Shown here: positions 3,645 through 64,000 of the stretch, piece by piece | Position numbering within the stretch: position 1 is the stretch's first letter | How the letters are laid out: each line of letters begins with the position of its first letter | From: Penicillus capitatus | Taxonomy: Eukaryota; Plantae; Chlorophyta | Length of the DNA stretch: 64,000 nucleotides | Reading direction: 5' to 3' | NCBI GenBank assembly: GCA_965649825.1 | Contig: OZ287700.1 | Coordinates: 1,364,001 to 1,428,000 of the forward strand | Notes under the pieces: model-generated | The model's input: the letters and a program-made list of their open reading frames with translations, nothing else | Told to the model about the DNA's origin: nothing | The model's database searches: none | Made by a program: the position numbers and the translations under genes

Positions 3645-4594
3645 TTAACCGGCAAAACGCGTGAGTCGAAGATTGATCTCACAAGGAACACACTTTGAGG
3701 ATGTCTGAAACGGCAAGAGTGCTGCTTCTGCCACATCCTCTGGATCCAACATTCTATCCGGGTTCGCCGTCGATGAACGCCTACCACAACGCAACGCATT
3801 CTCGCATCATCCGATATGCACGATGATGGCGAGCGAGCGAGCTCACGTGACGAAATCTGTCCGAACCATTCCTGGACTGATGATGCACACTTTGATGTTG
3901 TGATTCCTGAGTTCTTGATAACGTGAGAGCGTCCAGCCACGCAGTGCCCATTTCGAACTGGCGTACGCTGCAGCCCACGTCATCGGTTCAAGGCCAGCCA
4001 CAGAACCTGCAGATCTGCTGTCACATCAGCACGTGATGGCATAGTGGCAGCTGACCAATGTTTATGATAGCACCGTCCTCTTGCTCCACCATCTTCGGCG
4101 CAAGCATGTTCATCAGTGTCATGGGAGCAACCACGTTTACTTGCAACATCTGAATCCGAATCGCAAGTTTCAGAAAGATCGAGCGAAAGAGGCCTGCGAG
4201 CTATTTGCTGACCTGATTCCACTCTTCGGGCTTTCCCTGAAGACATTGATTGCCACTGGGCGATATGATCCCAGCGTTGTTCACCAACACGTCAATCGTG
4301 CCGTGTCTCTCCAAGGCGTGCTGAACGATCGAGAGGAAAGGGTGAGATACGACGCTGGTAAAGTGGACCTACGTTTGCGACGTTCTGGACATCGGCTGCG
4401 ACGGAGAGATCCGCTGCGTATGTCTCACAGAGTGGCGACCCCTCCGTGCGGCATCTCTCGGCCACTGCATCGAGCAGTTCTTTCGTACGAGAGACAAGAA
4501 ACAAAGTCGCTCCTTCCTTGGCGTAAGACAGAGCAATGGCTTCGCCGATTCCACGCGAAGCGCCGGTGACCAAACAGCGTTTTCCAGCCAACAT
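3645..4594 (-). CDS. short-chain dehydrogenase/reductase (SDR), copy 1, intact
   Basis: TGASRGIG cofactor motif, DVLVNNAG, INIGS, catalytic YASSK; GT-AG introns; ends LRLTRFAG-TAA. Confidence 0.9.
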
Positions 4595-5059
4595 CGAATT
4601 CCAAAGCGGCGGACGGTGATTCGTGCACGCAACGACGACCTTTATTCTTGTGCCAAGGATTACCTAATCATGCCGTTCCTGTCCGCAACTTCGTCTTCCG
4701 TGCGCCTCTGCTGCTGGACAGGTGTCGACAGAACCCTTCCGAACAGAACGCCTTTTGAAGCAGAAAGGGACGGATAACCGTTTTCAGCGACGCGAGGATG
4801 GCAGGAAGGCGCACGGCACACGCCGAATGCTGCACCGATCCTCAGTCAATGCCACGCAAGCACTCGCCACGTCTGGTGCTTTCGAGACATGTTGTGCTGC
4901 TTGGGTGTTTAGATGAGCAAAACCCTCGACGCGTCCTTTAAACATTGTTTTCACAAGGAGGAGCCCGCCCAATATATGGGACGGCTAAAAAACCTCCTCT
5001 GCAGTAGAGATCACAAAATTGAATGGCCCTGAGGTCATACGAGTCTGTCCATGACAGCT

Positions 5060-5998
5060 CTACTCTGCGAATCGAGTCAGACGCAACGTGATCTCACTCG
5101 GCACACATTTTGATGTTGTCCGAAATGGCAAGAGTGCCGCTTCTGCCACATCTTCAGGCTCCATCTTGCGATCTGCTATGCCCTTCTCAAACTTCCTGCT
5201 GCAAAGATCCCATCGACGAATCGATATGAAAGAGGACACACCCGGAGAATCCTGTACGGACGTAGGCTGGATGAATGAGGCAGACTTTGACATTGTAGTT
5301 TCGCAGTTCCTGATAGCACGAGAGTGTCTAGCCACGCAACGCCCATTTCGAACAGGCATAGGCCGCACGAGTGGTCATCGGTTCAATCCCGGCCACAGAC
5401 CCTATAACAACAACATCACCCTTCACGCGTCCATATACATCGCCTCCGTCGCGTCATACCCGTGTTGATTACTACTCCATCTTCCTGTTCGACCATCTTT
5501 GGCACTAACATATGCATCAGGATCATCGGAGCCATGACGTTTGCTTGAAGCATCTAATGCACAAAATCTCTTTCTGCCTGTCTATTCGTGATAGTTGACT
5601 TGATTCTACTCTTCTGGATCGCCCTTTAGACATTGTCCTCCACTTGGCGTTCCTACGCCGGCATTGTTCACCAACACATCCACTGTCCCGTATCGCTCGA
5701 GAGCGTGCTATAGAGAAGACGCCGTGGCTGGATTCAAAGCTATTAGTGCGTGATATACGTTCGCCACTTTGTTAACCTCGGCGCGAACGGAGAGATCCGC
5801 CGCAAAGGTATCGCACACTGGAGCACCTGCTCTGCGACATCTTTCTCCAGCAGCGTCAAGCGCCCTTTGGTTGCGGGACACGAGAAGAAGTTTTGCACGT
5901 TCTTTGGCATACGCCAAGGATATCGCCTCGCCGATTCCACGCGAAGCACCCGTTATTAAACACTGTTTATGCGCCAACATTCCCAGTCTGTTGTCCAA
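5060..5998 (-). pseudogene. SDR copy 2 (tandem paralog) with two in-frame TAG codons at Trp positions; pseudogene or recoded/edited gene
   Basis: TGASRGIG, VNNAG and YACSK are present, with matching intron positions wherever they could be aligned to copy 1 and no frameshift. TAG at 5606-5608 (EE*NQ vs EEWNQ) and 5328-5330 (LRG*TL vs LRGWTL). Confidence 0.8.
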
Positions 5999-6030: not shown

Positions 6031-8021
6031 TCAAACATCCTCAGAATCGGAGGCCCACGCTTTTTTATGCCGCTCTCGACTTCTGGCTCCCATCTCTGAG
6101 GCAACAAAGACATTGCTATCACGGACGATGCTGCGCACCACTGTACCGTTCTTCGTCACCGACATCCCATCGGTGACGATCTCCATGATCGGCTTCAGCT
6201 TCGCACGAAGGCATTCGATTTGCTCTAACAGCGACTCTTGAACGCGTTTCTACAATACAAACACCCGAAGAGATCGGTCAAGCGCGTCATCGTGTCGAAC
6301 CTTTGCCTCTAACAGTGACGCTTTCTCAGATTCGAGGCTCGTGTTCTCGAGTTTGAGCGAACGCATCTCTCGATCCTTTTCGGCCACGTCGGATCGCAGA
6401 TCGGCCAATTCTTCCGTCAGCAATTCCACCTGGACCGTTCATGCGTATCACTCTTCGAGAAGCTGTCAACGAAACGGACAACCTGGATTTCGAGATTGCC
6501 TTCGGACGTTGACCGTAAGGCAGATTTCTTATATTCGGCGTCGCGGGCAGCAGACTCTCGCAACGTTTCGAATTTCCTTTCCTCGCGGAGCTCTTGTAGC
6601 GCCTCTTCTCTTCTTGACCGCTCACGTGACAGCTGCTCTTGAGCCAAGGCATCGCGTCTCTTTAGCAAGTCCTTCAAAGCAGGATCCTCTCACACGTGCT
6701 CACTCTTGGCGCTGTCTCCGACGCAAACCTTGAGGCATCGAATGTGGTCGTCTTTTCTTCGCAAGCTCTCGGCCGCTCGGCTCTTCCATTTCTCTTTCTC
6801 GATTGATATCTCCGTTTTCAGTTTCATCAAACTGTCGCCCGAATCCTCTTCGAGTGTCTTCACCTTTATGGCAGAGAAATCGACGCGAGACTCCACAGAA
6901 CAAGGATGATGGACCTGTCTTTCCAGCCGATGTATGGCATCATCTTTAAACCCTATCTCTTGTCGTGCGCACTGAAGTTCTCTCGTGAGTTTCTCCTTCG
7001 TCCGTTCCGCCTCGTCCCGTTCATTCGTCGCTCGGCACCACCGTCGATAGTTCTCTTTACTGTCTCGCTCGGCAAACTTCAGATCATCACGCAGCGCCGA
7101 AACCGTATCGCAATCGGTCGTCTGTACACCATACGTTGCTCAAGAGCACATTCAAAGCGGAGAACGAACGCACTACATGTCGAATGCTGTCTTCGTGTGA
7201 ATTGCTTTTCCTACGGCAGCGACACTCCTTTTCGACTTCGGACAGGCGGCCGGCTAATCGCACGCAATCTTCTTCGCCCTTTCGTCCGACACAAAGCGCA
7301 TCAATTCTGTGTATGATGTGACGTCTCACACTTTGGCGACGGCGTAGAGCAGACGACTGTGGATGTCGGAATTACCGTTTGCGGAAAGCTCGTTCGCTTT
7401 GAGGCTCAATGCCCGTCGAACAATGGAATTCTCTTTGGCTTGATCTTCGCATTTGCACCGGAGGCTCTCGCATTTGCATTTTTCTTTTTCCAATTCTGAC
7501 CGAAGCTCCCGTACCTGTATCAAAGTATGTTGCACTCTGCCATTCCTTCACATCTGATTCTCCATACCTGTGATTTGAGAACATCACAACGTATCTGCCA
7601 CTCTTTGCTGTCGCCACCGTAGACGAGATCCCGTTCGAGACTTCGTTTTTCGCTCATAATGTCGGTCACTCTTTTCTATACGCGAAAAAAGTGACAGACA
7701 GCGTGTGCCTGGTCGATGCACACTTCGAGCCTCTTCTTCTCGGACACCATTCGTGCACAGGTGTGATTCGCCAATTCCAACTCGCGACATCTCTGTGCAT
7801 CCGCGCGCTTAAACGTGCGCACTGTTCTCTGCAGCTCTTCCACCTTCTCCTCGGCGCTCAAATGCTTCCGCGTCAAATGCTATTCGAAACAGGCTCTCGT
7901 CAGAACGACCAGTAGTCGTGAACGCAACCTTTAAATCCGTCTCCAGTGCATCCGTCTGGCTTTCCAGGCGTTTCTGTGTGCGTCTTCCCGCCTCGTCCAT
8001 CTTCAGACGCGTCGTCGTCAC
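6031..8021 (-). CDS. multi-exon coiled-coil protein, unknown function
   Basis: E/K/R/L-rich heptad exons (e.g. LSRERSRREEALQELREERKFETLRE); last exon ends WASDSEDV-TGA. Start uncertain. Confidence 0.6.
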
Positions 8022-26959: not shown

Positions 26960-29900
26960 ATGAAGTGGGCAGTATCTGGCGACCGTAGATCCAGAAAGGA
27001 AATACTCTTTCTCGCAAACGGGTGCGTGATGCCGCGCAGACATCTGTGCGTCGCTCGAACGCATATGCGTCGTCCTTGTAGCGTCCTTGTCGCCATCGCC
27101 GTCTTGTTGCTCGCCTGCGAGACCGCCGGCGACTCGACGTTTAGACTCGGCGCTGTCCTGAGCACGCAAGGAGAGACGGCAACGATGTCCGAAGCGCGAA
27201 ACGGCTATGAACTCGTTGTCCGTCGAGTCAACGCCCAATCATTGGGGCGCGGATTTCTGGTCGGTGGCCAAAACGAAACGCGAAGATTCCACTTTAAATA
27301 CGACTTCACTTGGCGCGAAGACAAAAGCGACCGGGAGATCCATGCAAAGCAGTTTGAAAAATTGATAAAGAGAGATAAGGTGCACTTTCTCGCTGGGTCA
27401 CATCCGAACTATGCAGCCGATGAGATGCGAATCGCCAATGAGAGCCAGCTTCTGAACTATCAGTGTTGTGCTGGACCCGATGAGCTTTATGCACAGAACT
27501 ATCCCACAGTCTTCGGTCTGCCTGCCTCAAACAAGCAATACACAAAGAACTCCATACGAGCCATCGGTCTACAGGGTGTCGGCAAGATAATGCTGGTATA
27601 CGATGAAGAAAGCGTTTTTACCCGGACGACATGCGAATCTGCCATCCGCTATTTCAAAGAGACAGAATCTGTCATGTCCGGACAGACGCCGCCGATCGTT
27701 GTGAAGTTTGGAAGAGAGAAAAGAGACATGTCGCGTTTCTTTGTGGACGTGGCGAAGGAGGCTCAGGAGTGCGGCGTGGAAGTTGTCTATGCTTGTGTCT
27801 TTCCGAATGAAGGCAAAAAACTCGTCAATGCTATGCATGACATCAGATATGCACTGAGGGCTTTCTTTTTGACAACGGGCCCCACGAAGCAGGACTGGAT
27901 CGATGGATTTGATCCGGCGTTTCGGGCGAATGGTCTACTCAGTGCAGCGCAGTGGCATCCGAATCTCCGATTTAGAGATCATGTGATGGGCTCTGCTGGT
28001 GAGTACGCGGATTTGTATTCGAGGACGTTCAATGGACAGAAACCATCCTACGTTGCGGCTGCAGCGTCGGCAGTGGGCGTCACCCTGACAATGGCAATCC
28101 AGGATGCATTCCATAGCTGTGACATCTCACAGACAAACGGCGACGTGGAATTACTCCTCTACCATCCCGCCACCATTCGATGTGATGAACCATTGGGCAG
28201 AACTGGTTACGAACGCGTATTGACCGCTTTATGGAAACTGAATAGAGAGACGTTTTTTGGATTTGTGAAGTTCAATGATTTTCGACGTAATGATGGACTG
28301 GAGACGGTGACGACACAGGTCTGTGAAGATAGAGGAGAAAATGGAAGCATTGTACGCAAGATCGAGGTTGTGTTGCCAGTGCAGTCGGCAACGCACCTGT
28401 TGAAATTCCCTGCAGAGAATTTCTACAGAGAGAAATGTCGCCCCGGATACAAACAGAATATAGATCCGTTTCAAGAATGTCTTCCGTGTCAACCTGGACA
28501 GGCGTCACACAAAACGGACGCTGAACATTGTGACCGATGTCCGCTTGGAGAATGGACAAATCTGACAGCGCAATCTGAGTGCTCTATGTGTCCTGCTGGC
28601 ACAACAACTCAAATGAGAGGAGCGCACTGTATAGAAGAATGCAAATGCAAAGTGGGTTACTTCAACGCCGCCGGGGAGACGGGCGTCGCCTGCGATCCGT
28701 GTCCCGTCGGCGCTCTCTGTCCGGGAGGAACGGAGCTGCCGATTCCTCTCCAGGGATACTGGGCGAACGAGACACGCCGGTCGGAGATCTACGCGTGCGA
28801 CGACGCCTCCGTCTGCACGGGAGGGAACGGCAACGCCTGTCGACAGGGCCACACCGGAAGGTAATCTCTCACTCTCACTCTCTCGGTCGCGGTGGACGAC
28901 CTCTGTCTGTCTGTTCCCAGGATGTGCGCGCAGTGCGAGGACGGATACTTCAACGCGCTCAACGGGTGCCACAGGTGCCTGGACAGGGGCGTCATCGTCT
29001 TCCTCTCCGTCGCCCTTCTGGTCGGCTGGTACGTGATCAACGTCACCGTCTCCAGGAGCGTCACCTCCCTGGAGATGATGCTAGGGTGGGCGCAGCTGGC
29101 CAACATCATCGGCGACATCAACCTGAACTGGACGCAGAACGTGACGACGATGTTCGGCGTGGCCAACCTGCTCGACTTCGACGTCGACATCCTGGAGCCG
29201 GGCTGCGTCGTCGAGTGGGGCTTCCGCGCCAACTTCATCACGCAGCTGCTGTTGCCGTTCGTGATGTCGACCATGGCGGCCAGCGGATACCTGCTGTCCG
29301 CCGCCGTCCACCTGCTGATCCGCAGCGGGAGGCTGAAGCTGGACGAGCGCACCGAGCGCCTGCTGTCCGTCTTCGTGGTGGTGTCCGGAGACGGCGAGCA
29401 GCTCAAGGCGAAGTGGGACGCCACAGTGGCCACGTTCCTGTCGGCGGTGGACGTCACCTACGTGACCATCGCCAAGTACTGCTTCGACGTCTTCAGGTGC
29501 GAGGAGATCGCCGGCGTGTCGGTGCTCAGGGAGTCGCCCGACGTGCTCTGCGGAGATTTCTACCACCTGTCGCTCAAGCTGCTCTCCGTGTCGGGGATCG
29601 TCTTCTACGTCGTCGGCTACCTCGTCTACCTTCTGTGGAAGCTCTACGATCTGAGGACGCGCTGCGCGTTCGCCGACGCGGCGAACCTTCGGCGCCTCGG
29701 ATTCGTCTATCAGAAGTTCGAGCTGGACTACTACTTCACGCCCGCCGTCATCATCGTCCGCAAGCTCCTCTTCGTCCTCGTGCTGGTCTACGTGAACAAT
29801 CCAGCATTTCAGATTGGACTTCTGTCCATCGTCCTCAACACGTCGTTAATGATTCAGGTGTACACAGCTCCGTATGTGGACACCTACTTTGACGTCCTAT

Positions 29901-31171
29901 TCAGTTTTCTGCTCGTCGCCTTAATGTTTGAAGCCTTTGGCGGGTTAATGTTCTATAGTGAGAACCTGCCTGACGATAACCGACGCATTCTGGAATGGTT
30001 GGTCATCACGTCATTATTGATGTTGACGGTCGTTTTTCTGGTGACCCTCTGTATGGAGATCGCCAAAAAGTTCTGCATGAAATACGTTAAAAGAGCCCAA
30101 GTACTATACGTCAAAGATGACCTTAGACGAAGCCTGAAGAGGGACACATCCGCCCATAGACAGATTTCGACCCGTTCAGCCTTCTCGCAAACTTTTCTCC
30201 GCTCAATGTCGTCAAGGACAGAACATGAAATTAGCTTTGAACTCTTGGAGACTTTTCGACCAAGCTTCGTATACAATAGCATCCGCAAACAGCCGGAATC
30301 GATCAAACAATGGAATGAGCTATCAAACAAACTAAAAGACTACATGTCTGACCAGTCAGACACCGCATATCTCTCGATGAATCCAGTTGCCAAATTCTGG
30401 AGAAAATTAGTGGATCGTTTCCCGGAGCTGGTGGATTTCTTGGCCGTCGCGGATGATGAAACACGCGAGAAATTCAAAACTGTCGCCACCTGTCTCTTCC
30501 GTGATTTCTATCTCACAAACAAATTGACACCGTTGCCGCTGATGGACGTCCTGAACTGGAGAGATCGTGCTCCAATGGCACAGTGGCTGGCCGTAGCGCC
30601 GCCAAAACATCGCGAGTTCTTTCTTCATGTCATGGCCGAGATGTTCGAAAGCAACGAGAACAATGAAGCTGCCGTGATCTTACGATCGAGACTCCACAGT
30701 GGACGACGACGTTTCGACCCTCTGATGGAGAATCGCCGATGGGTTCGAATGAACCGCAGCATCAGCCGAGTTCTGTCCAGTCTGTCAAACGGACTCAGTC
30801 CATTTGATCACACGGCTATGTTTCCCGTCATCCATCTGCCTGGCCATCCGACGCGACCGCCGCCATTTCAGGGAAGGCGTCATCGCGGAACTCTTGAGAT
30901 CATGGTTCAGGATGAACGACGTCCAGTGGCACCAATGACACCGATACCTGGTAGTGAAAAATCGCTGGCCCATGTGGCGGCTGTCTCTGACGGTTCCGCA
31001 TCAGAGATCCGGTCATCTGAGGCACCTGACGAAATTTGCGTAGAGACCTCATCCGCTGGCGAGAGCTCTTCTTCGGCGAAAGATGGATCGGAGAACGAAC
31101 AAAACAACAGCAGATCGCCACGATCTCGGAACAATAATTCGACGTCTCTCGAAGCTGAAACTGACGCTTAG
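26960..31171 (+). CDS. receptor-like protein copy 1: signal peptide + Venus-flytrap/type I periplasmic-binding domain + Cys-rich repeats + about 8-9 TM + cytoplasmic domain; single intron 28861-28920
   Basis: FRLGAVLSTQG...NGYEL...VN...EDKSD...LIKRDKVHFLAGS; QWHP; YVAAAASAVG; FFGFVKFN; CxxCxxG repeats; RLGFVYQKFELDYYF...RKLLFV...PAFQ...APY membrane domain. The true ATG may be 27029 or 27065. Confidence 0.8.
28645..29817 (+). repeat. 1173-bp near-identical segment, copy A (matches 33546-34718)
   Basis: Same length; about 7 exonic differences seen plus a few in the 60-nt intron; abrupt divergence on both sides. Confidence 0.95.
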
Positions 31172-31980: not shown

Positions 31981-34900
31981 ATGTATGTGTTTGTGGCTTT
32001 GGTTTTGTTACTCGTAAGGACCCGATGTGATTCCGCATTTCGCGTCGGTGCTGTGCTGAGCACAAAGGGCTCGACGAAAGAGATGGAGCAGGCGAAGAAT
32101 GGATACGCTTTGTTCTTTGACGCCATAAACGAGCGAAATGGCGGCCAGGGGTTCCTTGTTGAAGGAAGGAATGGCACCAAGGGATACTGGTTTCGCTATG
32201 CGTTTCTATCACGTGAAGACGCCAGCGACTTCGCCGTTCACCAACGGCAACTCGACGAGCTGATGACGAAAGAGAAGATTCACTTTCTCGGAGGATCCCA
32301 CTTGCACTACGATCGCATGGAAGTGAAGGCTGCCGTTGACAACGGTGTCCTTCTTTACAAGTGCTGTGTGGATGCGAAAATGCAGTCCCACGACAACAGT
32401 CCGTTTGTTTTTGTCATTCGAACGTCGAAAATGGTCTACACGCACAAATTCCTGGCGGCTTCGGTCCTTGCTGGAAGCCTTCGCTATGGTTTCGTGGTCG
32501 ATGTGGGCGAACCGAGCTTCATGTATGCGTACTACGGAGCATTGGCCTTACTGCAGGAGACGTCTGTTCTCAAGAAAGGCGTCAACAACATTACCTACGT
32601 GAAACTGTTCAATTCTTCCGAGGCTGAACCCACAGCTCAGCTGTTTCGAGAGGTTGCTCGGGCAATGAAGCACCAGAGGGTGGATTCGTTGATTGCAGCT
32701 GTTAACGCCGATCACGGCAAACATATTGTGAACGCATTGCACGAAGCGCAGTACTCTTTAAAATCGACCTTCATCATGAGAGGCCCGACGGACCAGGAGT
32801 GGGTCGATGCGTTTGAGGATGACAATCGAGTGGAACGCCTGGTCAGTACTGTTCAATGGCATGAGAAACAGAACGACCACGATGACTTCTTTGGGAAGAC
32901 AGCTGTCTACGTGGATATGTACACAAGACGATATGGAGAGAAGCCGACGAGCTACAGTGCTGGAGCGAGTGCTGTCGGGGCGACGCTGACCCAGGCCATC
33001 CAGAATGCGTTCGCTCACTGCGACATCTCAAAGACGCATGGTGACGTGGATACGCTTCTCTACTCTCCAGAGGCGATTGATTGTGAGGATGATCTTGGAG
33101 ACAGAGGATATGATCGCGTGCTGGCATCTCTGCAGGCAATCGATATGCAAACGTTCTTTGGTTTTGTCAAGTTTGATCGTTATCGACGAAATCTGGCAAA
33201 CAAATGCGCCACCACTCAGGTGTTCGTGACCACGTCAGCGAATGGAGCGAAACACAGAGATATTGAAGTTGTCCTGCCAGTCGGTGTTGCATCGCATGAG
33301 GCCGTCCTTCCCGCGAAGAATTACTATAAAGAGGTCTGCATGCCAGGGACCTTTGTAGGACCAGATGATTTCAATCCGTGCGTCGAGTGCAGCGAAGGGG
33401 AAGCGTCCTATGAGAAGAACGCGCCGTTTTGTGATAGTTGTCCGGTTGGCGAATGGAGGGATAAAAAAGGGGGATCGAGTTGCAATACGTGTCCAGAAGG
33501 GACAACAACAGCTGCGAGAGAGTCGACAAACCTGAGCGATTGCATATGCAAAGTGGGTTACTTCAACGCCGCCGGGGAGACGGGCGTCGCCTGCGATCCG
33601 TGTCCCGTCGGCGCTCTCTGTCCGGGAGGAACGGAGCTGCCGATTCCTCTCCAGGGATACTGGGCGAACGAGACCCGCCGGTCGGAGATCTACGCGTGCG
33701 ACGACGCCTCCGTCTGCACGGGAGGGAACGGCAACGCCTGTCGACAGGGCCACACCGGAAGGTAATCTCTCACTCTCTCTCTCCCAGTCGCCGTGGACGA
33801 CCTCTGTCTGTCTGTTCCCAGGATGTGCGCGCAGTGCGAGGACGGATACTTCAACGCGCTCAACGGGTGCCACAGGTGCCTGGACAGGGGCGTCATCGTC
33901 TTCCTCTCCGTCGCCCTTCTGGTCGGCTGGTACGTGATCAACGTCACCGTCTCCAGGAGCGTCACCTCCCTGGAGATGATGCTGGGGTGGGCGCAGCTGG
34001 CCAACATCATCGGCGACATCAACCTGAACTGGACGCAGAACGTGACGACGATGTTCGGCGTGGCCAACCTGCTCGACTTCGACGTCGACATCCTGGAGCC
34101 GGGCTGCGTCGTCGAGTGGGGCTTCCGCGCCAACTTCATCACGCAGCTGCTGTTGCCGTTCGTGATGTCGACCATGGCGGCCAGCGGATACCTGCTGTCC
34201 GCCGCCGTCCACCTGCTGATCCGAAGCGGGAGGCTGAAGCTGGACGAGCGCACCGAGCGCCTGCTGTCCGTCTTCGTGGTGGTGTCCGAGGACGGCGAGC
34301 AGCTCAAGGCGAAATGGGACGCCACCGTGGCCACGTTCCTGTCGGCGGTGGACGTCACCTACGTGACCATCGCCAAGTACTGCTTCGACGTCTTCAGGTG
34401 CGAGGAGATCGCCGGCGTGTCGGTGCTCAGGGAGTCGCCCGACGTGCTCTGCGGAGATTTCTACCACCTGTCGCTCAAGCTGCTTTCCGTGTCGGGGATC
34501 GTCTTCTACGTCGTCGGCTACCTCGTCTACCTTCTGTGGAAGCTCTACGATCTGAGGACGCGCTGCGCGTTCGCCGACGCGGCGAACCTTCGGCGCCTCG
34601 GATTCGTCTATCAGAAGTTCGAGCTGGACTACTACTTCACGCCCGCCGTCATCATCGTCCGCAAGCTCCTCTTCGTCCTCGTGCTGGTCTACGTGAACAA
34701 TCCAGCATTTCAGATTGGTGCCATTGCTGTGGTCATTATTGCCTCGCTGATGGTGCACGTCTACACTGCTCCCTACGTTGACACCTATCTGGATGTCCTC
34801 TTCAGTTTCCTTCTCATTGCTCTCATGTGCGAAGCTTTCGGAGGACTAATGTTTTACAGCGAGAACTTGCCAAACGATGACCGCAGAATTCTGGAAATCG

Positions 34901-35970
34901 TGGTCTTGACTTCAAATCTCCTGGTTGTCGGCGTGTTCATGACATTCTTCGTCATAGAGTTGATCAAGAAGTATCACGTTCGATACATCACCTCGAAGCT
35001 CATTAAGTTCGCAAGAGACGAGATCGAAACCGTCGGTTGTCTCTTCTTACATCGTCTCTCCTCTCGAAAATCCCCCGCCTCTAGTGAAGCCTCTGTCAAT
35101 CATGGATCAGACAAGGACGACAGTACCCCTTTCGATCTCTTGGACACCTTCAATCCCCGCTTCGTCCACAATGCCCTCAAGAAGAAACCCTCACTGATCA
35201 AAGACTGGGACACAGTGAGCCGCATGCTGAAAAATTACATGTCCGATCAGTCCGAGAGTTCTTATCTCTCGATGAATCCCGTTGCCAAATTCTGGCGAAA
35301 GCTCGTGGACCGTTTCCCGGAGCTGGTGGATTTCTTGGCCGTCGCGGACGACGAGACCCGTGACAAATTTGAAGACGTTGCCAAATGCCTCTTTCGCGAT
35401 TTCTATCTCACCAACAAAGTGATACCGCTCCCTCTTATGGATGTCCTCAACTGGCGAGACTACGCTCCCATGTCTCAGTGGCTGGCCATTGCCGACGACA
35501 GCGATCGAGCGTTCTTTTTCCAGACAGTCGCCCAGATGTTCAAGAACAATGGAAATCATACGGCTGCCGGTGTTCTGATGTCCAAGATCCGCAACGGAAG
35601 ATACGACCCTGATCTGCATGGCCGTGGACTGAGACATTTGCGTTCGCTCTCGCATCTTCAGCAATCGGCTCTGTCGAGTCTTAAGGAAGGATTGCATCCG
35701 TTTACCCATTCCGCCTATCGCCGTTCGCTGGATCCTGATTCGCTCGTGAATCGGCGCATTAGCGATTTCTTCGAGGCACTGAGTAAAGAATCGAGTGAAT
35801 CCTCGCGTTCGCCCACACCTTCGCCGAACGATCATCCTTCGCACAAAGATACAGACGCTGACCTGGTGCCAGATAACATCGATGGACAGCCATCTGCTGA
35901 GAACAACGTATCGAATTCCAACTCCGAAACGGCGAAGCCTCCGCACGGTGTCGGAAAACTTACGCCATAA
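31981..35970 (+). CDS. receptor-like protein copy 2 (same architecture); single intron 33762-33821
   Basis: MYVFVALVLLLVRTRCDSAFRVGAVLSTKG...; Cys-rich repeats; TM domain; shared cytoplasmic YLSMNPVAKFWRKLVDRFPELVDFLAVADDETR. Confidence 0.8.
33546..34718 (+). repeat. 1173-bp near-identical segment, copy B (matches 28645-29817)
   Basis: Direct comparison by eye; offset 4901 bp. Confidence 0.95.
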
Positions 35971-36609: not shown

Positions 36610-38318
36610 ATGAGGATGGCACGAAAGATCGCTTTCGGTGCCTTGTCTCTGCCTTTCTGTCACTTTCTCGTTTCCACAGAGTTCGATAGAGACAACGCCG
36701 TTGCTCTGCTCAGTTGTGTGCCTCGCACACTTCGCGCTGTGCGATGGGCCCTTTCTGCTGGTTGGGACTACTGCACCCACATGCACTCTCCGTCGTCGAC
36801 AGACTGGTTCGCCTTGCATCGTCACTGGGCAGAGGCTTTAACGTCCGTATGCAAAGCAAATGGCGGTGTTTATGTCAAAGTATCCAAATCAGAAGCAAGA
36901 CCTGCTGTGAGCCGTCTTGAGTAGGTGGCTCAGATGCTCTCAACTTTTGGAGCGATTCCAGAAGCGTATCGAGTGAGATTAGGTCAGTTGCATGACCATT
37001 GCACTCCAAAGCCTTTTGAAAGCATACACAAGTCTCTGAGCAAAGAACTGGGAGACGGATATCGATCGCTCTTTCATCGAATCGACGAAGTGGCAACAGC
37101 TGCGGCGTCTATCGCCCAAGTCTGCCATCCCAGGCCAAATGGCGTCTCTCACATGTGCATCCAGGTGCATCAAGCAGAGCTCAAATCTGGACAGAAAGTG
37201 GCAGTAAAGGTACAGTATCCAGCACTGAAGAAAGCTATCGGAGCCGATCTCAATTGCCTCCTGGTCTTGACCAGAGTCTCGGATTTTATCTTTCCACACT
37301 ACCCAACACATTGGATGATTGAGAAAGTCGAAGAACAGATCGCTGAAGAGATGGATTTTGGCGTCGAAGTTCGCAATGCACAGATGCTTGAAAGCAGAAT
37401 GCATCATCGCAAAGATATCCGGTCCAGTATACACCTCTACCAGAACCATTCTTCGATGTTTGTCTGCTGGTCAGGATCCCGCAGATGTTTGAAGAACTCT
37501 GCACGTCACGTCTGTTGGTTATGGAATGGATCGATGGATGCAAACTCTCCGATTGCCAATGCTTGCGACGCAGAGGGATCAATCCACGGAGCGTGGCATT
37601 GACGCTTGTCGATGCATTCTCCGAGATGACTCTCATTCACGGTTTCATTCATGGTGATCCGCATCCTGGAAACCTCCTCGTCATTCCTACACCGTACCCT
37701 CAACTGCAATCCCGTTGAGATTATTCAGTCCATCCTTTTAGTTTCGAGAAGAGAGAGCATTGGCTGTGGAGGTTGCTCTCTTTTCAGTGGCGCACGCCGT
37801 TTCAACTGGTGCTGCTGGATCACGGGCATTACCTGGAAATAGATCATGCCACACGGCGCGACTATTGTGAGCTGTGGTGCAGTCTTGTTCGCGGCGATCA
37901 GCGCAGTGCCATCGAGGCAGCAACTCGGATGTGTCACGACGCTTCGGGTGGTCGATTGTTGCCCAATGTTCTCTATCGCCCTTTCGATCAGCGTACCAGA
38001 CGAAACCTTCGTTCCAGCATGAGCATGGCTGACCTGGTGCACCTTCTCAAGTCTGCTCCCCAGACGCTGGTCGATGCACTTCGCATCGTTGCCGTCGTGC
38101 GTCACGTCGCGACAGCTTTGGCAGATATCAAAGCCGATCGACCATATATCGAAGCGATGCATGCTTGGAATGGCCTTCTGTTGGAGGATAAGATGGAAGC
38201 CAATTTCCGGATCGCCTGGCGTGTCGAATTTCGAGTGAAACTGCGTCTGTGGATCATGCGTCTGGCAATGTGGCTTCGCGACATCTCATACAGCTGGGAG
38301 CTTTTTCGAGACGTCTAA
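36610..38318 (+). CDS. ABC1/UbiB atypical kinase (ADCK1/5-like)
   Basis: NGGVYVK|VAQ, AAASIAQ|VH, VAVKVQYP, EEMDF, IHGDPHPGN, LVLLDHG. Confidence 0.9.
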
Positions 38319-61403: not shown

Positions 61404-62411
61404 ATGTGTTTGAGAATTTCAGTTTGGGGCGTGATGGGAATCGTCGGAGACACGTGCGCCGCGGTCGCGCACACGCGTCTCGAGGACAGCGAAAAAGAAC
61501 CTCAGTCAATCCAAAGACTACAAGGATGATGCGTACACGTCGGATATATCCCCGGCGCCCGCGGACAGACGTCATGTCGCGAAGCTGCGACGTGTCCGGT
61601 ACGCGGGCCGGAAACCATTTACGTCCACTCGCCAGGCGACTTGTCATGTCGCTATAGCGATTCGTATCTTTCGCTCCGCTTATGTGCATCTGCGAGCCCG
61701 ACGTTTGTAGAAGGACAGCTGAATGCCCTTTAGGTGAAGAAAGCCTGTTCGACGCGTGTCGCAATCAGGAGGTCTCGTAAAAATCTGGCAAATCTATTGC
61801 ACAGGTAGAATTCAGACTGCAAGAAGGATAACCAAAACATGTCGCAACAGATCGCCGCTGAATAAGCAAAACAAACATCTGGCTTTGTTAAATCGCAGAC
61901 TTCAGCTACAGTAAGCAACGTTCTGTCGAGGGATTTAACAAGTTTTTGACAGCTACAGTTTTTAGCCCACTAACTATTTTCAAAACAACAAAGTGCATTG
62001 CACGATGTGCCGAATTCGGTCGTTTGGGACTTCTTGGCCTAAACTCTACTCGTATTAATGAGTTGCTGTCTAGACGAAGTACTGCTGGTTCGCCAGCCCC
62101 GAACGGTCTTTGATTTCAGTATCTGACACAGAACACCAAACGAATCGTGTTGAAAAGGACATACTCCTGGAAGGTCCACCAAGAGGTATGATGTTGGGTT
62201 TTGTCACGTGCCTTTCAGATCGGGAGAGGCCGTCAAGGAGGAACGCTTAAGTACTGCGGAATGCATTTCTGACGGGTTAAATCAAACACACCGTATGACA
62301 GGCAACACTCCGTCGATGGCTCTAGAGGTTTTAATGGACACGATGATTTGCGTTTGTCACAATCTATCGCGTGTTCTTTTACGCCGCGTTTTCACCTGCT
62401 CTCCTCGTTCG

Positions 62412-64000
62412 ATGACGACAATGGGTCATTACGCCATTTCGATCGCTCAACCACTTTCCTCGATGCCGTGTGCGTTGCTCCTCTTGTTTCTCGCGAGCCT
62501 TGTGAAATGCGACAACTCCACTTTTCGTTTCGGGGCTGTACTCAGCACAGAGGGCGATACGGCTGCGATGATAGAGGCTAAATTCGGATACGAACTTTTC
62601 TTTGATACTCTAAACGCTCGCTCTGACGGTCGAGGCTTTTACCTGAGCGGCAAAAACGCGGTTGATGGATTCTACTTCAAATTCGACTTCCTCTGGCGCG
62701 AAGACTCCAGCGACGCAGACATCCATGAGAGAGAAGTGAAAAGACTGATAGAAGAAGACAAAATCCATTTCTTGGGCGGCTCTCATCCAACATATGCAGA
62801 AAAAGAAATGAGTATGGCGAATGATAGCGGCATCCTTAACTATCATTGTTGTGTCGGACCTGATGCGCTTTACGAGCGAGATCGACGTACCGTGTTTGGC
62901 GTCCAGGCATCCAATAAGGAATATACCAAAACGATCATCCGAACGTTGGCTTTGGCAGAAGTGGGTGCTCTTGCGTTCGTATATGGAGAAGATAATGCAT
63001 TCACGCGGACAACGTGTGAAGCTGGCATCAAGTTTGCTGGCGAAATGGGGGCAGTGCATGTGGAGAACTCCACACATTTCATTCGCACATTCAACCAATC
63101 CGTGCCCGACTCAGATTTCTTAGACGATGTGGTGAGGGGAGTGAAGGAACAAGCCATTACAGCTGTGATCGCATGTGTCTTTCCGGATGCAGGGAAGCTC
63201 CTCGTTGATGCATTTCACGATAATGAGTACCCACTAAAGGCGTTTTTTCTCACAACGGGGCCCACAAGACAAAAGTGGGTAGATGGATTTGATCCCAAGT
63301 ACCGAGCACATGATCTCCTGAGTGCTGCCCAGTGGCATCATGATATGAAGTACACCGATAGCTTCTTCGGATCGGCTCTGGGATACACCGAATTGTACCA
63401 GGACAAATTCGACAATCATTTGCCAGCCTATACGTCCGCAGGCGCCTCAGCTGTTGGGTTGACACTTGTGGAAGCCATGAAGCACGCCTTTATGTCTTGT
63501 GACATATTGGCCACGGAAGGAAATGTGGAGAAGCTTCTCTACGATGCTGACGCTGTCGTGTGCGATGACGAGAAAGCGATACGCGGCTATGATCGTATAC
63601 TGGAAGCTCTGGCTGATTTAGACATGGACACGTTCTTCGGTGGAGTGAAGTTTAACTTCTACCGAAGGAACGTAGGGATGGATCCAGTGACAACCCAAGT
63701 CTTCAAGCGAACGTCGCAAGCTGGAAAAGAATACGCAGAAATCGAAGCTGTTCTGCCTTTGGGATACGCGACGGAGTTGATGAACTATCCCGCAGAGAAC
63801 CATTACAAAGAAGTCTGTGGGCCTGGTTACTACGTTGGAAGCGATTCCTTCTCACCATGTGTGATGTGTGAACCAGGAGAAATCTCCGATCAAAATAACG
63901 CCAAACATTGCGACAGCTGTCCAGTGGGTTATTGGACAAATAAACCTGGTCAGCACAAGTGTGAACTGTGTCCAGAAGGAACACATACAGAGATTCGAGG
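62412..64000 (+). CDS. receptor-like protein copy 3 (Venus-flytrap + Cys-rich repeats), runs off the window
   Basis: MTTMGH...ALLLLFLASLVKCDNSTFRFGAVLSTEG...IHFLGGSHPTY...YHCCVGPD...AQWH...FFGGVKFN...CELCPEG; open to the window end. Confidence 0.85.
   Translation, partial: MTTMGHYAISIAQPLSSMPCALLLLFLASLVKCDNSTFRFGAVLSTEGDTAAMIEAKFGYELFFDTLNARSDGRGFYLSGKNAVDGFYFKFDFLWREDSSDADIHEREVKRLIEEDKIHFLGGSHPTYAEKEMSMANDSGILNYHCCVGPDALYERDRRTVFGVQASNKEYTKTIIRTLALAEVGALAFVYGEDNAFTRTTCEAGIKFAGEMGAVHVENSTHFIRTFNQSVPDSDFLDDVVRGVKEQAITAVIACVFPDAGKLLVDAFHDNEYPLKAFFLTTGPTRQKWVDGFDPKYRAHDLLSAAQWHHDMKYTDSFFGSALGYTELYQDKFDNHLPAYTSAGASAVGLTLVEAMKHAFMSCDILATEGNVEKLLYDADAVVCDDEKAIRGYDRILEALADLDMDTFFGGVKFNFYRRNVGMDPVTTQVFKRTSQAGKEYAEIEAVLPLGYATELMNYPAENHYKEVCGPGYYVGSDSFSPCVMCEPGEISDQNNAKHCDSCPVGYWTNKPGQHKCELCPEGTHTEIR

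Follow-up and report, generated by a model that had tools for sequence, protein, structure and literature searches.

In the 64-kb window analyzed here (64,000 nucleotides of Penicillus capitatus contig OZ287700.1), the region 3645-5980 on the minus strand holds two classical short-chain dehydrogenase/reductase (SDR) genes in tandem, with five exons each. The frame of copy 1 is uninterrupted, whereas that of copy 2 is broken by two internal TAG codons, both of them at positions of conserved Trp. Copy 2 is probably a young unprocessed (duplicated) pseudogene, or a null allele, possibly one that still segregates, of a classical SDR oxidoreductase. Among the alternatives listed by a preceding sequence-only reading of the window was a pseudogene of young age that had taken two C-to-T hits on the opposite strand; we take it as the best explanation of the data.

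Gene models of the SDR pair and the two amber codons

Both gene models were rebuilt by hand from the minus-strand sequence of the window. The two genes, the stop codons within copy 2 and the related Trp codons are as follows.

3645-4594, minus strand: SDR copy 1 (hand-built model); exons 4594-4373, 4320-4213, 4149-4056, 4006-3847 and 3780-3645; introns of 52, 63, 49 and 66 nt; TAA stop at 3647-3645 (minus strand)
5060-5980, minus strand: SDR copy 2 (hand-built model); exons 5980-5759, 5707-5600, 5553-5460, 5401-5242 and 5198-5060; introns of 51, 46, 58 and 43 nt, all GT..AG; terminal TAG at 5062-5060 (minus strand)
5606-5608, minus strand: first internal TAG of copy 2; codon 108, in PEE*NQ, 8 nt before the exon 2 donor; CTA on the plus strand
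5328-5330, minus strand: second internal TAG of copy 2; codon 166, in ALRG*TL, exon 4; ten codons past the catalytic Tyr and six past the catalytic Lys of YxxxK
4219-4221, minus strand: Trp codon (TGG) of copy 1 at the site of the first internal TAG
3933-3935, minus strand: Trp codon (TGG) of copy 1 at the site of the second internal TAG
5343-5345, minus strand: remaining Trp codon of copy 2 (TGG, in SKW)

The product of copy 1 has 239 amino acids and zero lesions. Copy 2 comprises 240 sense positions, and the two internal TAG codons are the sole breaks of its frame. Exons 1-4 are equally long in both copies (222, 108, 94 and 160 nt), with identical phases. The introns of both copies are short (43-66 nt), bounded by GT and AG, and unrelated in sequence between the copies. 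As the structure of copy 2, introns included, matches that of its intact neighbor, it is a duplicate generated at the DNA level and not a retrocopy. Copy 2 retains its ATG, its frame and every one of its 8 GT/AG splice dinucleotides, and its terminal stop lies where the homologous stop of copy 1 does.

The sequence hallmarks of the enzyme family are present in both copies. TGASRGIG, NNAG, N115, S143 and Y156xxxK160 all fall in columns that are invariant or nearly so in the alignment with outgroup homologues. The PF00106 adh_short profile is matched by copy 1 with 184 bits and by copy 2, once its stops are written as X, with 159 bits (cut-off 26.6), and the closest solved structure to copy 1 is 3RKR, annotated as 'short chain oxidoreductase' (E 9e-42). 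The full-length frame of a classical SDR is displayed by copy 1 and lost by copy 2, owing to TAG at codons 108 and 166. The hand-built model and the alignment thus agree with the sequence-only reading, which had described the splice sites, frame, cofactor motif and YxxxK of copy 2 as intact.

Alignment with 19 outgroup homologues offers a greater level of detail about the two interrupted positions. Each TAG column holds Trp in 17 of the 19 proteins, and in the second column the other two carry Phe. Where copy 1 has its fourth Trp (MTW), copy 2 carries Thr, which leaves three Trp-homologous sites in copy 2, one kept as TGG and two changed to TAG. Both this count and the pairing of the two TAG codons with TGG codons of copy 1 had been proposed before, and they hold in the rebuilt models and the alignment. 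The two changes are of the same kind, G>A on the coding strand and C>T on the plus strand, in a TCCA>TCTA context, and lie 278 nt apart. Elsewhere in copy 2, several further coding-strand TGGA sites stay unchanged.

The upstream side of copy 2 is crowded. A coiled-coil gene on the same strand ends with TGA at 6031-6033 (minus strand), just 50 nt before the ATG of copy 2 (5978-5980), so that copy 2 is left nearly without intergenic space of its own. There is no room for a promoter of copy 2 outside the coding region or 3' end of this neighbor; copy 1 has 465 nt upstream.

Age of the duplication, long constraint and loss of copy 2

The two copies are 64-69% identical in nucleotides and 71% in amino acids. 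The proportion of synonymous differences (pS) between them is 0.73, that is, saturated, while the proportion of non-synonymous differences (pN) is 0.18, corresponding to a non-synonymous divergence (dN) of about 0.21. Homology at the nucleotide level spans only the stretch from the ATG to near the stop codon, indicating that the flanks of both copies have fully decayed. The copies are closer to each other than to their homologues in Caulerpa lentillifera (63% and 59% amino-acid identity), and Bryopsis is also more distant. In Bryopsis sp. KO-2023, where synteny was examined, the SDR gene is single and intact, its introns differ, and the surrounding 10 kb contain no tandem partner. Saturation of pS, together with the closeness of the copies to each other and the single copy of Bryopsis, indicates a duplication that is old but lineage-specific. 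The values of pS and pN agree with the old duplication that had been claimed from the high synonymous divergence. Since pN is low at saturated pS, copy 2 has been under purifying selection nearly throughout its history.

Signs of relaxed constraint in copy 2 are slight. With Caulerpa as outgroup, 25 amino-acid changes are unique to copy 2 vs 16 to copy 1 (p = 0.21); with Bryopsis, the counts are 22 vs 10 (p = 0.05). On a profile of the 19 outgroup homologues, copy 2 with its Trp codons restored reaches 328.5 bits vs 346.6 bits for copy 1, a score 5% lower. Such slight differences would suit a very recent loss of copy 2 as well as no loss at all. The excess of ~ 9-12 replacements in copy 2, over ~ 536 non-synonymous sites, would amount to ~ 0.02 neutral substitutions per site if these changes were neutral. 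The neutral span implied by this excess would be less than ~ 2% of the time since duplication, and over such a span one would expect ~ 0.4 nonsense hits, ~ 1 indel and ~ 0.3 splice-site hits. With expected lesion counts this low, two stops and nothing else are not out of line, and a very young pseudogene is quantitatively self-consistent.

The course of events can be best pictured as follows. An ancient tandem duplication would have been followed by purifying selection that kept both copies almost ever since. Recently, copy 2 would have acquired a pair of true G>A mutations in its coding strand, equivalent to C>T at CpA on the plus strand, that turned two conserved Trp codons into amber codons. 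The first stop is predicted to truncate the product at residue 107, within the Rossmann fold and before the catalytic Asn/Ser/Tyr/Lys; because translation would end ahead of these residues, no active enzyme is expected from copy 2. Three introns lie downstream of the first stop, hence nonsense-mediated decay probably removes the transcript. The intact copy 1 would cover the function, and the time since the loss would have been too brief for indels, splice-site loss or visible amino-acid change to appear. We infer, in short, that the stops of copy 2 are recent and not decoded and that its transcript is subject to nonsense-mediated decay. Rescue of copy 2 by gene conversion from copy 1 was also considered and set aside, as copies 64-69% identical in nucleotides are too diverged. 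If copy 2 is such an ordinary young pseudogene, it is useful only as a small example of a long-kept duplicate that is dying.

A number of observations weigh against a lost gene. The pN/pS values are alike before, between and after the two TAG codons, and dN downstream of the first stop does not exceed that upstream; the comparison of dN/dS past the first TAG, which the sequence-only reading had called for, revealed no rise. Likewise, the profile deficit of copy 2 is spread evenly across the three segments and is not focused past the stop. All 18 of the 18 invariant columns are kept by both copies, and of the 36 columns with a conservation of 90% or more, copy 2 keeps 35, with copy 1 departing at the same one. 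No frameshift, indel, splice-site loss or start-codon loss was found in the rebuilt model of copy 2. A gene whose stops are repaired in RNA would likewise show the double TGG>TAG change, the kept conserved columns, an unraised dN, an even deficit and no other lesion.

The nature of the two stops points in the same direction. With Trp restored, a stop codon can arise in the coding sequence of copy 2 by 16 different transitions and 72 different transversions, of which 3 are TGG>TAG. By mutational expectation, TGG>TAG would account for ~ 6% of the nonsense paths of this gene. Given two nonsense substitutions, the probability that both are TGG>TAG is 0.33% at a transition bias (kappa) of 2 and 1.4% at kappa 8, and simple mutation models overall yield 0.2-1.5%. 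An upper bound, obtained by allowing transitions only, is (3/16)^2 = 3.5%. For orientation, the window's receptor-like paralogues, which appear recently converted, display a transition/transversion ratio of 1.16, or kappa ~ 2.3 per path. The double TGG>TAG coincidence is real yet modest, and it is the sole point that favors more than an ordinary pseudogene.

Editing, error, clustered mutation and recoding as alternatives

The sequence-only reading had proposed copy 2 as a candidate for restorative adenosine-to-inosine (A-to-I) editing or UAG readthrough. The descriptive basis of this proposal stands, but recoding itself receives no positive support from RNA structure, from readthrough context, from a suppressor tRNA in the window or from a second case. 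Under restorative editing, copy 2 would be functional, and in some life stage or condition both UAG codons would be deaminated to UIG and read as UGG (Trp), which we judge unlikely. The mechanism would resemble that of the premature-stop-corrected (PSC) pseudogenes of Fusarium and Neurospora, in which the tRNA deaminase Tad2/Tad3 first shields G>A changes at Trp codons and is later needed for their correction. Such a history would fit a coding sequence that arose by gene duplication, has long been constrained and is otherwise flawless, with TAG at ancestral conserved Trp codons as its only lesions, and it would account for an outcome that chance yields only 0.2-1.5% of the time. To our knowledge, ADAT2/3 is universal in eukaryotes. 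In F. graminearum, 71 PSC genes are known, 6 of them with two sites; G-to-A changes of TGG are the main source of their TAG codons, and duplication gave rise to some of these genes (PMC10776026). However, fungal A-to-I mRNA editing depends on the fungal protein Ame1, a stage-specific cofactor (PMC11087585). In the literature searched, A-to-I mRNA editing is not reported from green algae.

Local sequence context is closer to the fungal preference at one site than at the other. Fungal A-to-I editing favors U at - 1, A or G at + 1 and + 3, and hairpin loops (PMC11156358), preferences that are statistical only. Both sites of copy 2 read UAGA (+ 1 G, + 2 A), with AAU CAA following the stop at site 1 and ACA CUC at site 2. 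The U at - 1 and the G at + 1 are automatic for any UAG, while the + 3 base is A at site 1, fitting the preference, and C at site 2, which misses it. An active protein would nevertheless require that both sites are efficiently edited on one and the same mRNA.

RNA structure offers little to an editing enzyme. In the predicted local folds, the A of site 1 lies in a weak stem, and for site 2 the A is placed in a weak loop of 6 nt above a stem of 3 bp; the folds are weak and inconsistent, and neither TAG resides in a tRNA-anticodon-type hairpin loop. The best intramolecular duplexes at the two TAG codons reach - 16.6 and - 19.4 kcal/mol, compared with a null of - 20.0 +/- 2.9 kcal/mol for random 25-mers of the same pre-mRNA, so no extended duplex for an ADAR-type enzyme exists at either TAG beyond chance. 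Editing-type RNA structure was rejected on these two grounds, the weak and inconsistent folds and duplexes no stronger than those of random 25-mers. One inverted repeat of 10 nt, 5327-5336 in exon 4 and 5723-5732 in intron 1, has its single mismatch (A.C) exactly at the A of the second TAG and would pair perfectly over 10 bp with the ancestral TGG. It is one of only three such pairs in 1.2 kb and lacks an equivalent in copy 1. As an ADAR substrate it is too short, and we judge it a chance feature (~ 2% by post hoc estimate).

The other genes of the 64-kb window provide no second in-frame TAG. Apparent in-frame stops at 28862 and 33763 (TAA) and at 36922, 13884 and 6250 (TAG) proved to lie in or at the ends of short GT..AG introns or in another frame. 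Introns at 28861-28920, 33762-33820, 6250-6300 and 36878-36924 have frame-keeping lengths, so that nothing but a stop within them or at their end closes them to translation; the 51-nt intron of the coiled-coil gene, with its terminal TAG, is one example. When all six frames are viewed without splicing, such introns mimic lesions with a single in-frame stop and could pass for recoding candidates. Alternative splicing does not bypass the stops of copy 2 either. At site 1, use of the GT within GAG|GTAG removes 10 nt and shifts the frame, and the only in-frame option removes 14 conserved codons; at site 2 none is possible. Scans of metagenomes with 34-40-nt patterns spanning each TAG, with R at the variable base, returned no match.

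We consider it improbable that a chlorophyte with Bryopsidales as nearest database relatives uses site-specific A-to-I mRNA editing to restore Trp at premature amber codons, with copy 2 as a conditionally expressed SDR whose UAG codons form an editing-dependent switch. The consequences would be considerable. Stop-correcting A-to-I editing of nuclear mRNAs is so far known as a feature of filamentous ascomycetes, where it resolves trade-offs between growth and reproduction. Found here, it would mark the first case in Viridiplantae of nuclear transcripts whose stop codons are restored by editing, independent of the fungal Tad2/Tad3-Ame1 system, and would mean that the mechanism evolved more than once. 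In that case, the annotation of algal genomes should retain 'pseudogenes' that carry TAG at Trp positions.

A recently lost copy 2 presupposes that the two transitions are real. Alternatively, they could stem from an error of consensus or base calling or from DNA damage, with a true genome that reads TGG twice and an intact copy 2, for instance when a methylated or deaminated cytosine of the plus strand is read as T. Systematic miscalls at modified cytosines occur in some long-read chemistries, and both changes are indeed C>T on the plus strand, in the same TCCA>TCTA context and only 278 nt apart. Such an artefact would account at once for a copy 2 that is otherwise faultless. On the other hand, the several other TGGA sites on its coding strand are unchanged, and all other conserved genes examined in the 64 kb are unbroken, namely those for GMP synthase, a kinesin motor, ABC1 kinase and dNK and three receptor-like genes of 1300-1400 codons. 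These unbroken genes indicate good sequence quality and make random error improbable; two independent random stop-making errors within one 720-nt coding sequence would be vanishingly rare. Taken together, we find an artefact improbable.

The same strand coordination might also reflect one mutational episode. A single clustered event, through exposure of single-stranded DNA or an AID/APOBEC-like deaminase acting on the plus strand, could have made both C>T changes, and copy 2 would still be a pseudogene. As the hits would then not be independent, most of the statistical surprise would be gone. Clusters of C>T changes confined to one strand form a recognized mutational class, and the two changes lie close together and share a CpC*pA context (asterisk after the mutated base). 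However, a match of context between just two sites is weak, and copy 2 displays neither a general G>A excess nor a dinucleotide signature of a deaminase. Relative to copy 1, it shows 25 G>A vs 23 A>G and 25 C>T vs 21 T>C substitutions. The (CpA+TpG)/(ApC+GpT) ratio gives no sign of CpA/TpG depletion, with 1.30 for copy 2 vs 1.31 for copy 1, and TpA/ApT in copy 2 (0.50) is close to that of the window (0.47). Hypermutation resembling repeat-induced point mutation or the action of APOBEC was rejected because of this symmetry of substitution spectra and dinucleotide indices. For a limited cluster of two hits, we likewise see a low probability, slightly below that of an artefact.

Least probable is translational recoding, whether by programmed UAG readthrough, a UAG suppressor tRNA or a variant nuclear code. 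The idea draws on the host. The SDR copies have their closest proteins in Caulerpa lentillifera and Bryopsis sp. KO-2023, with Caulerpa as best match of copy 2 (59%). GMP synthase is closest to that of Bryopsis (66%), followed by probable Caulerpa, Ostreobium and other chlorophytes (63-65%). Overall, no chlorophyte in the collections exceeds 63-66% identity to proteins of the window, the top values coming from Bryopsis, Caulerpa and Ostreobium. A look-up of the exact product of the kinesin open reading frame returned no match, and no transcript match was found either. The SDR and GMP synthase matches place the host among the chlorophytes with Bryopsidales as nearest database relatives, consistent with the alga suspected in the sequence-only reading. 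Within the Ulvophyceae, the Dasycladales, Cladophorales and Trentepohliales have reassigned TAA and TAG to Gln, but the Bryopsidales keep the canonical code (PMC2984419), and a known reassignment to Gln would not restore Trp.

The genetic code of this genome is the standard one. A TAA closes GMP synthase right after the universally conserved ...IEWE, exons of 600-770 codons (open reading frames up to 768) are free of TAA and TAG, and TAA, TAG and TGA each terminate long open reading frames. Copy 2 itself terminates on TAG. A variant nuclear code was rejected on account of this evidence, and a code change as explanation is largely refuted. Readthrough fares no better. The contexts AAUCAA and ACACUC are not of the CARYYA type, the predicted folds contain no stable downstream structure, and neither a tRNA gene, suppressors included, nor an Rfam family was found in the 64-kb window. 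When UAG is read through by near-cognate decoding, the residue inserted is Gln, Tyr or Lys and not Trp.

Surroundings in the window and comparison with known systems

The window contains one other repeated family, a set of receptor-like genes of ~ 1300-1400 codons, which is intact and has no in-frame TAG. Its members are the following.

26960-31171, plus strand: receptor-like gene, copy 1 of the tandem
31981-35970, plus strand: receptor-like gene, copy 2 of the tandem
62154-64000, plus strand: third, partial copy

Each comprises a domain of the periplasmic-binding-protein type, ephrin-receptor-like/NCD3G cysteine-rich repeats and ~ 7 hydrophobic segments. The cores of the first two (~ 28645-29817 and ~ 33546-34718), which include the short in-frame intron, differ at only about a dozen positions, whereas their N- and C-terminal parts are just 40-60% identical. 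From its sequence, the pair core looks like a product of recent gene conversion.

The genes for GMP synthase (14927, minus strand) and for a kinesin with an N-terminal SAM domain (14997, plus strand) are divergent, with their first ATGs ~ 70 nt apart. Along with introns of 43-66 nt, this proximity indicates a very compact nuclear genome. Between 48000 and 58000 on the plus strand, a strong purine excess extends over ~ 10 kb (AT skew up to 0.26, GC skew ~ 0.1). Long plus-strand open reading frames in this region match no Pfam family save for a marginal tropomyosin-like hit, and probably belong to a gene for a very large coiled-coil or low-complexity protein. TGTAA, the usual poly(A) signal of chlorophytes, occurs 60 times in the window vs ~ 119 expected and is absent downstream of most genes. 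Because the genes of the window are not generally followed by it, it was dismissed as an uninformative marker of transcript ends.

Several known systems can be set beside copy 2. With classical SDR oxidoreductases (PF00106; FabG/YdfG-like, closest structure 3RKR), both copies share TGxxxGxG, NNAG, the Asn-Ser-Tyr-Lys tetrad and a length of ~ 240 amino acids. The eukaryotic subgroup to which they belong is patchy, with members in Caulerpa, Bryopsis, trebouxiophytes, gregarines and many unnamed metagenomic sequences. At the amber/W site of hepatitis delta virus, ADAR1, a metazoan enzyme, edits UAG to UIG within a long and highly paired rod RNA. Conversion of amber to Trp by deamination of adenosine would be the principle shared with copy 2, but around neither of its TAG codons is there a duplex beyond chance.

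In the pattern of its lesions, copy 2 agrees in every point with the PSC 'pseudogenes' of Fusarium graminearum and Neurospora crassa (PMC4817773, PMC10776026, PMC11087585). In-frame TAG derived from TGG, a conserved coding sequence and an origin by duplication are common to both, and two-site cases exist as well, such as PUK1 and 6 of the 71 F. graminearum genes. In contrast, the host of copy 2 is a green alga and not a filamentous ascomycete, copy 2 is known from DNA alone, its TAG codons lack an anticodon-type hairpin loop in the predicted folds, and the fungal cofactor is lineage-specific. The non-canonical code of ulvophyceans (PMC2984419) likewise involves in-frame TAG in nuclear genes, in green algae to whose class the present host is related. 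Here, however, TAA and TAG terminate, the sites correspond to Trp and not Gln, and in-frame TAG codons are limited to one gene of the window.

Duplicated pseudogenes and polymorphic null alleles of tandem pairs provide the last comparison. Copy 2 is unusually clean for such an element, with two stops only, both at Trp codons, and its constraint has been very long (saturated pS, dN/dS of the order of 0.1), with no measurable relaxation. Like them, it is an intron-bearing copy made at the DNA level that adjoins an intact paralogue, and it is disabled by nonsense changes of the commonest mutational class (G:C>A:T).

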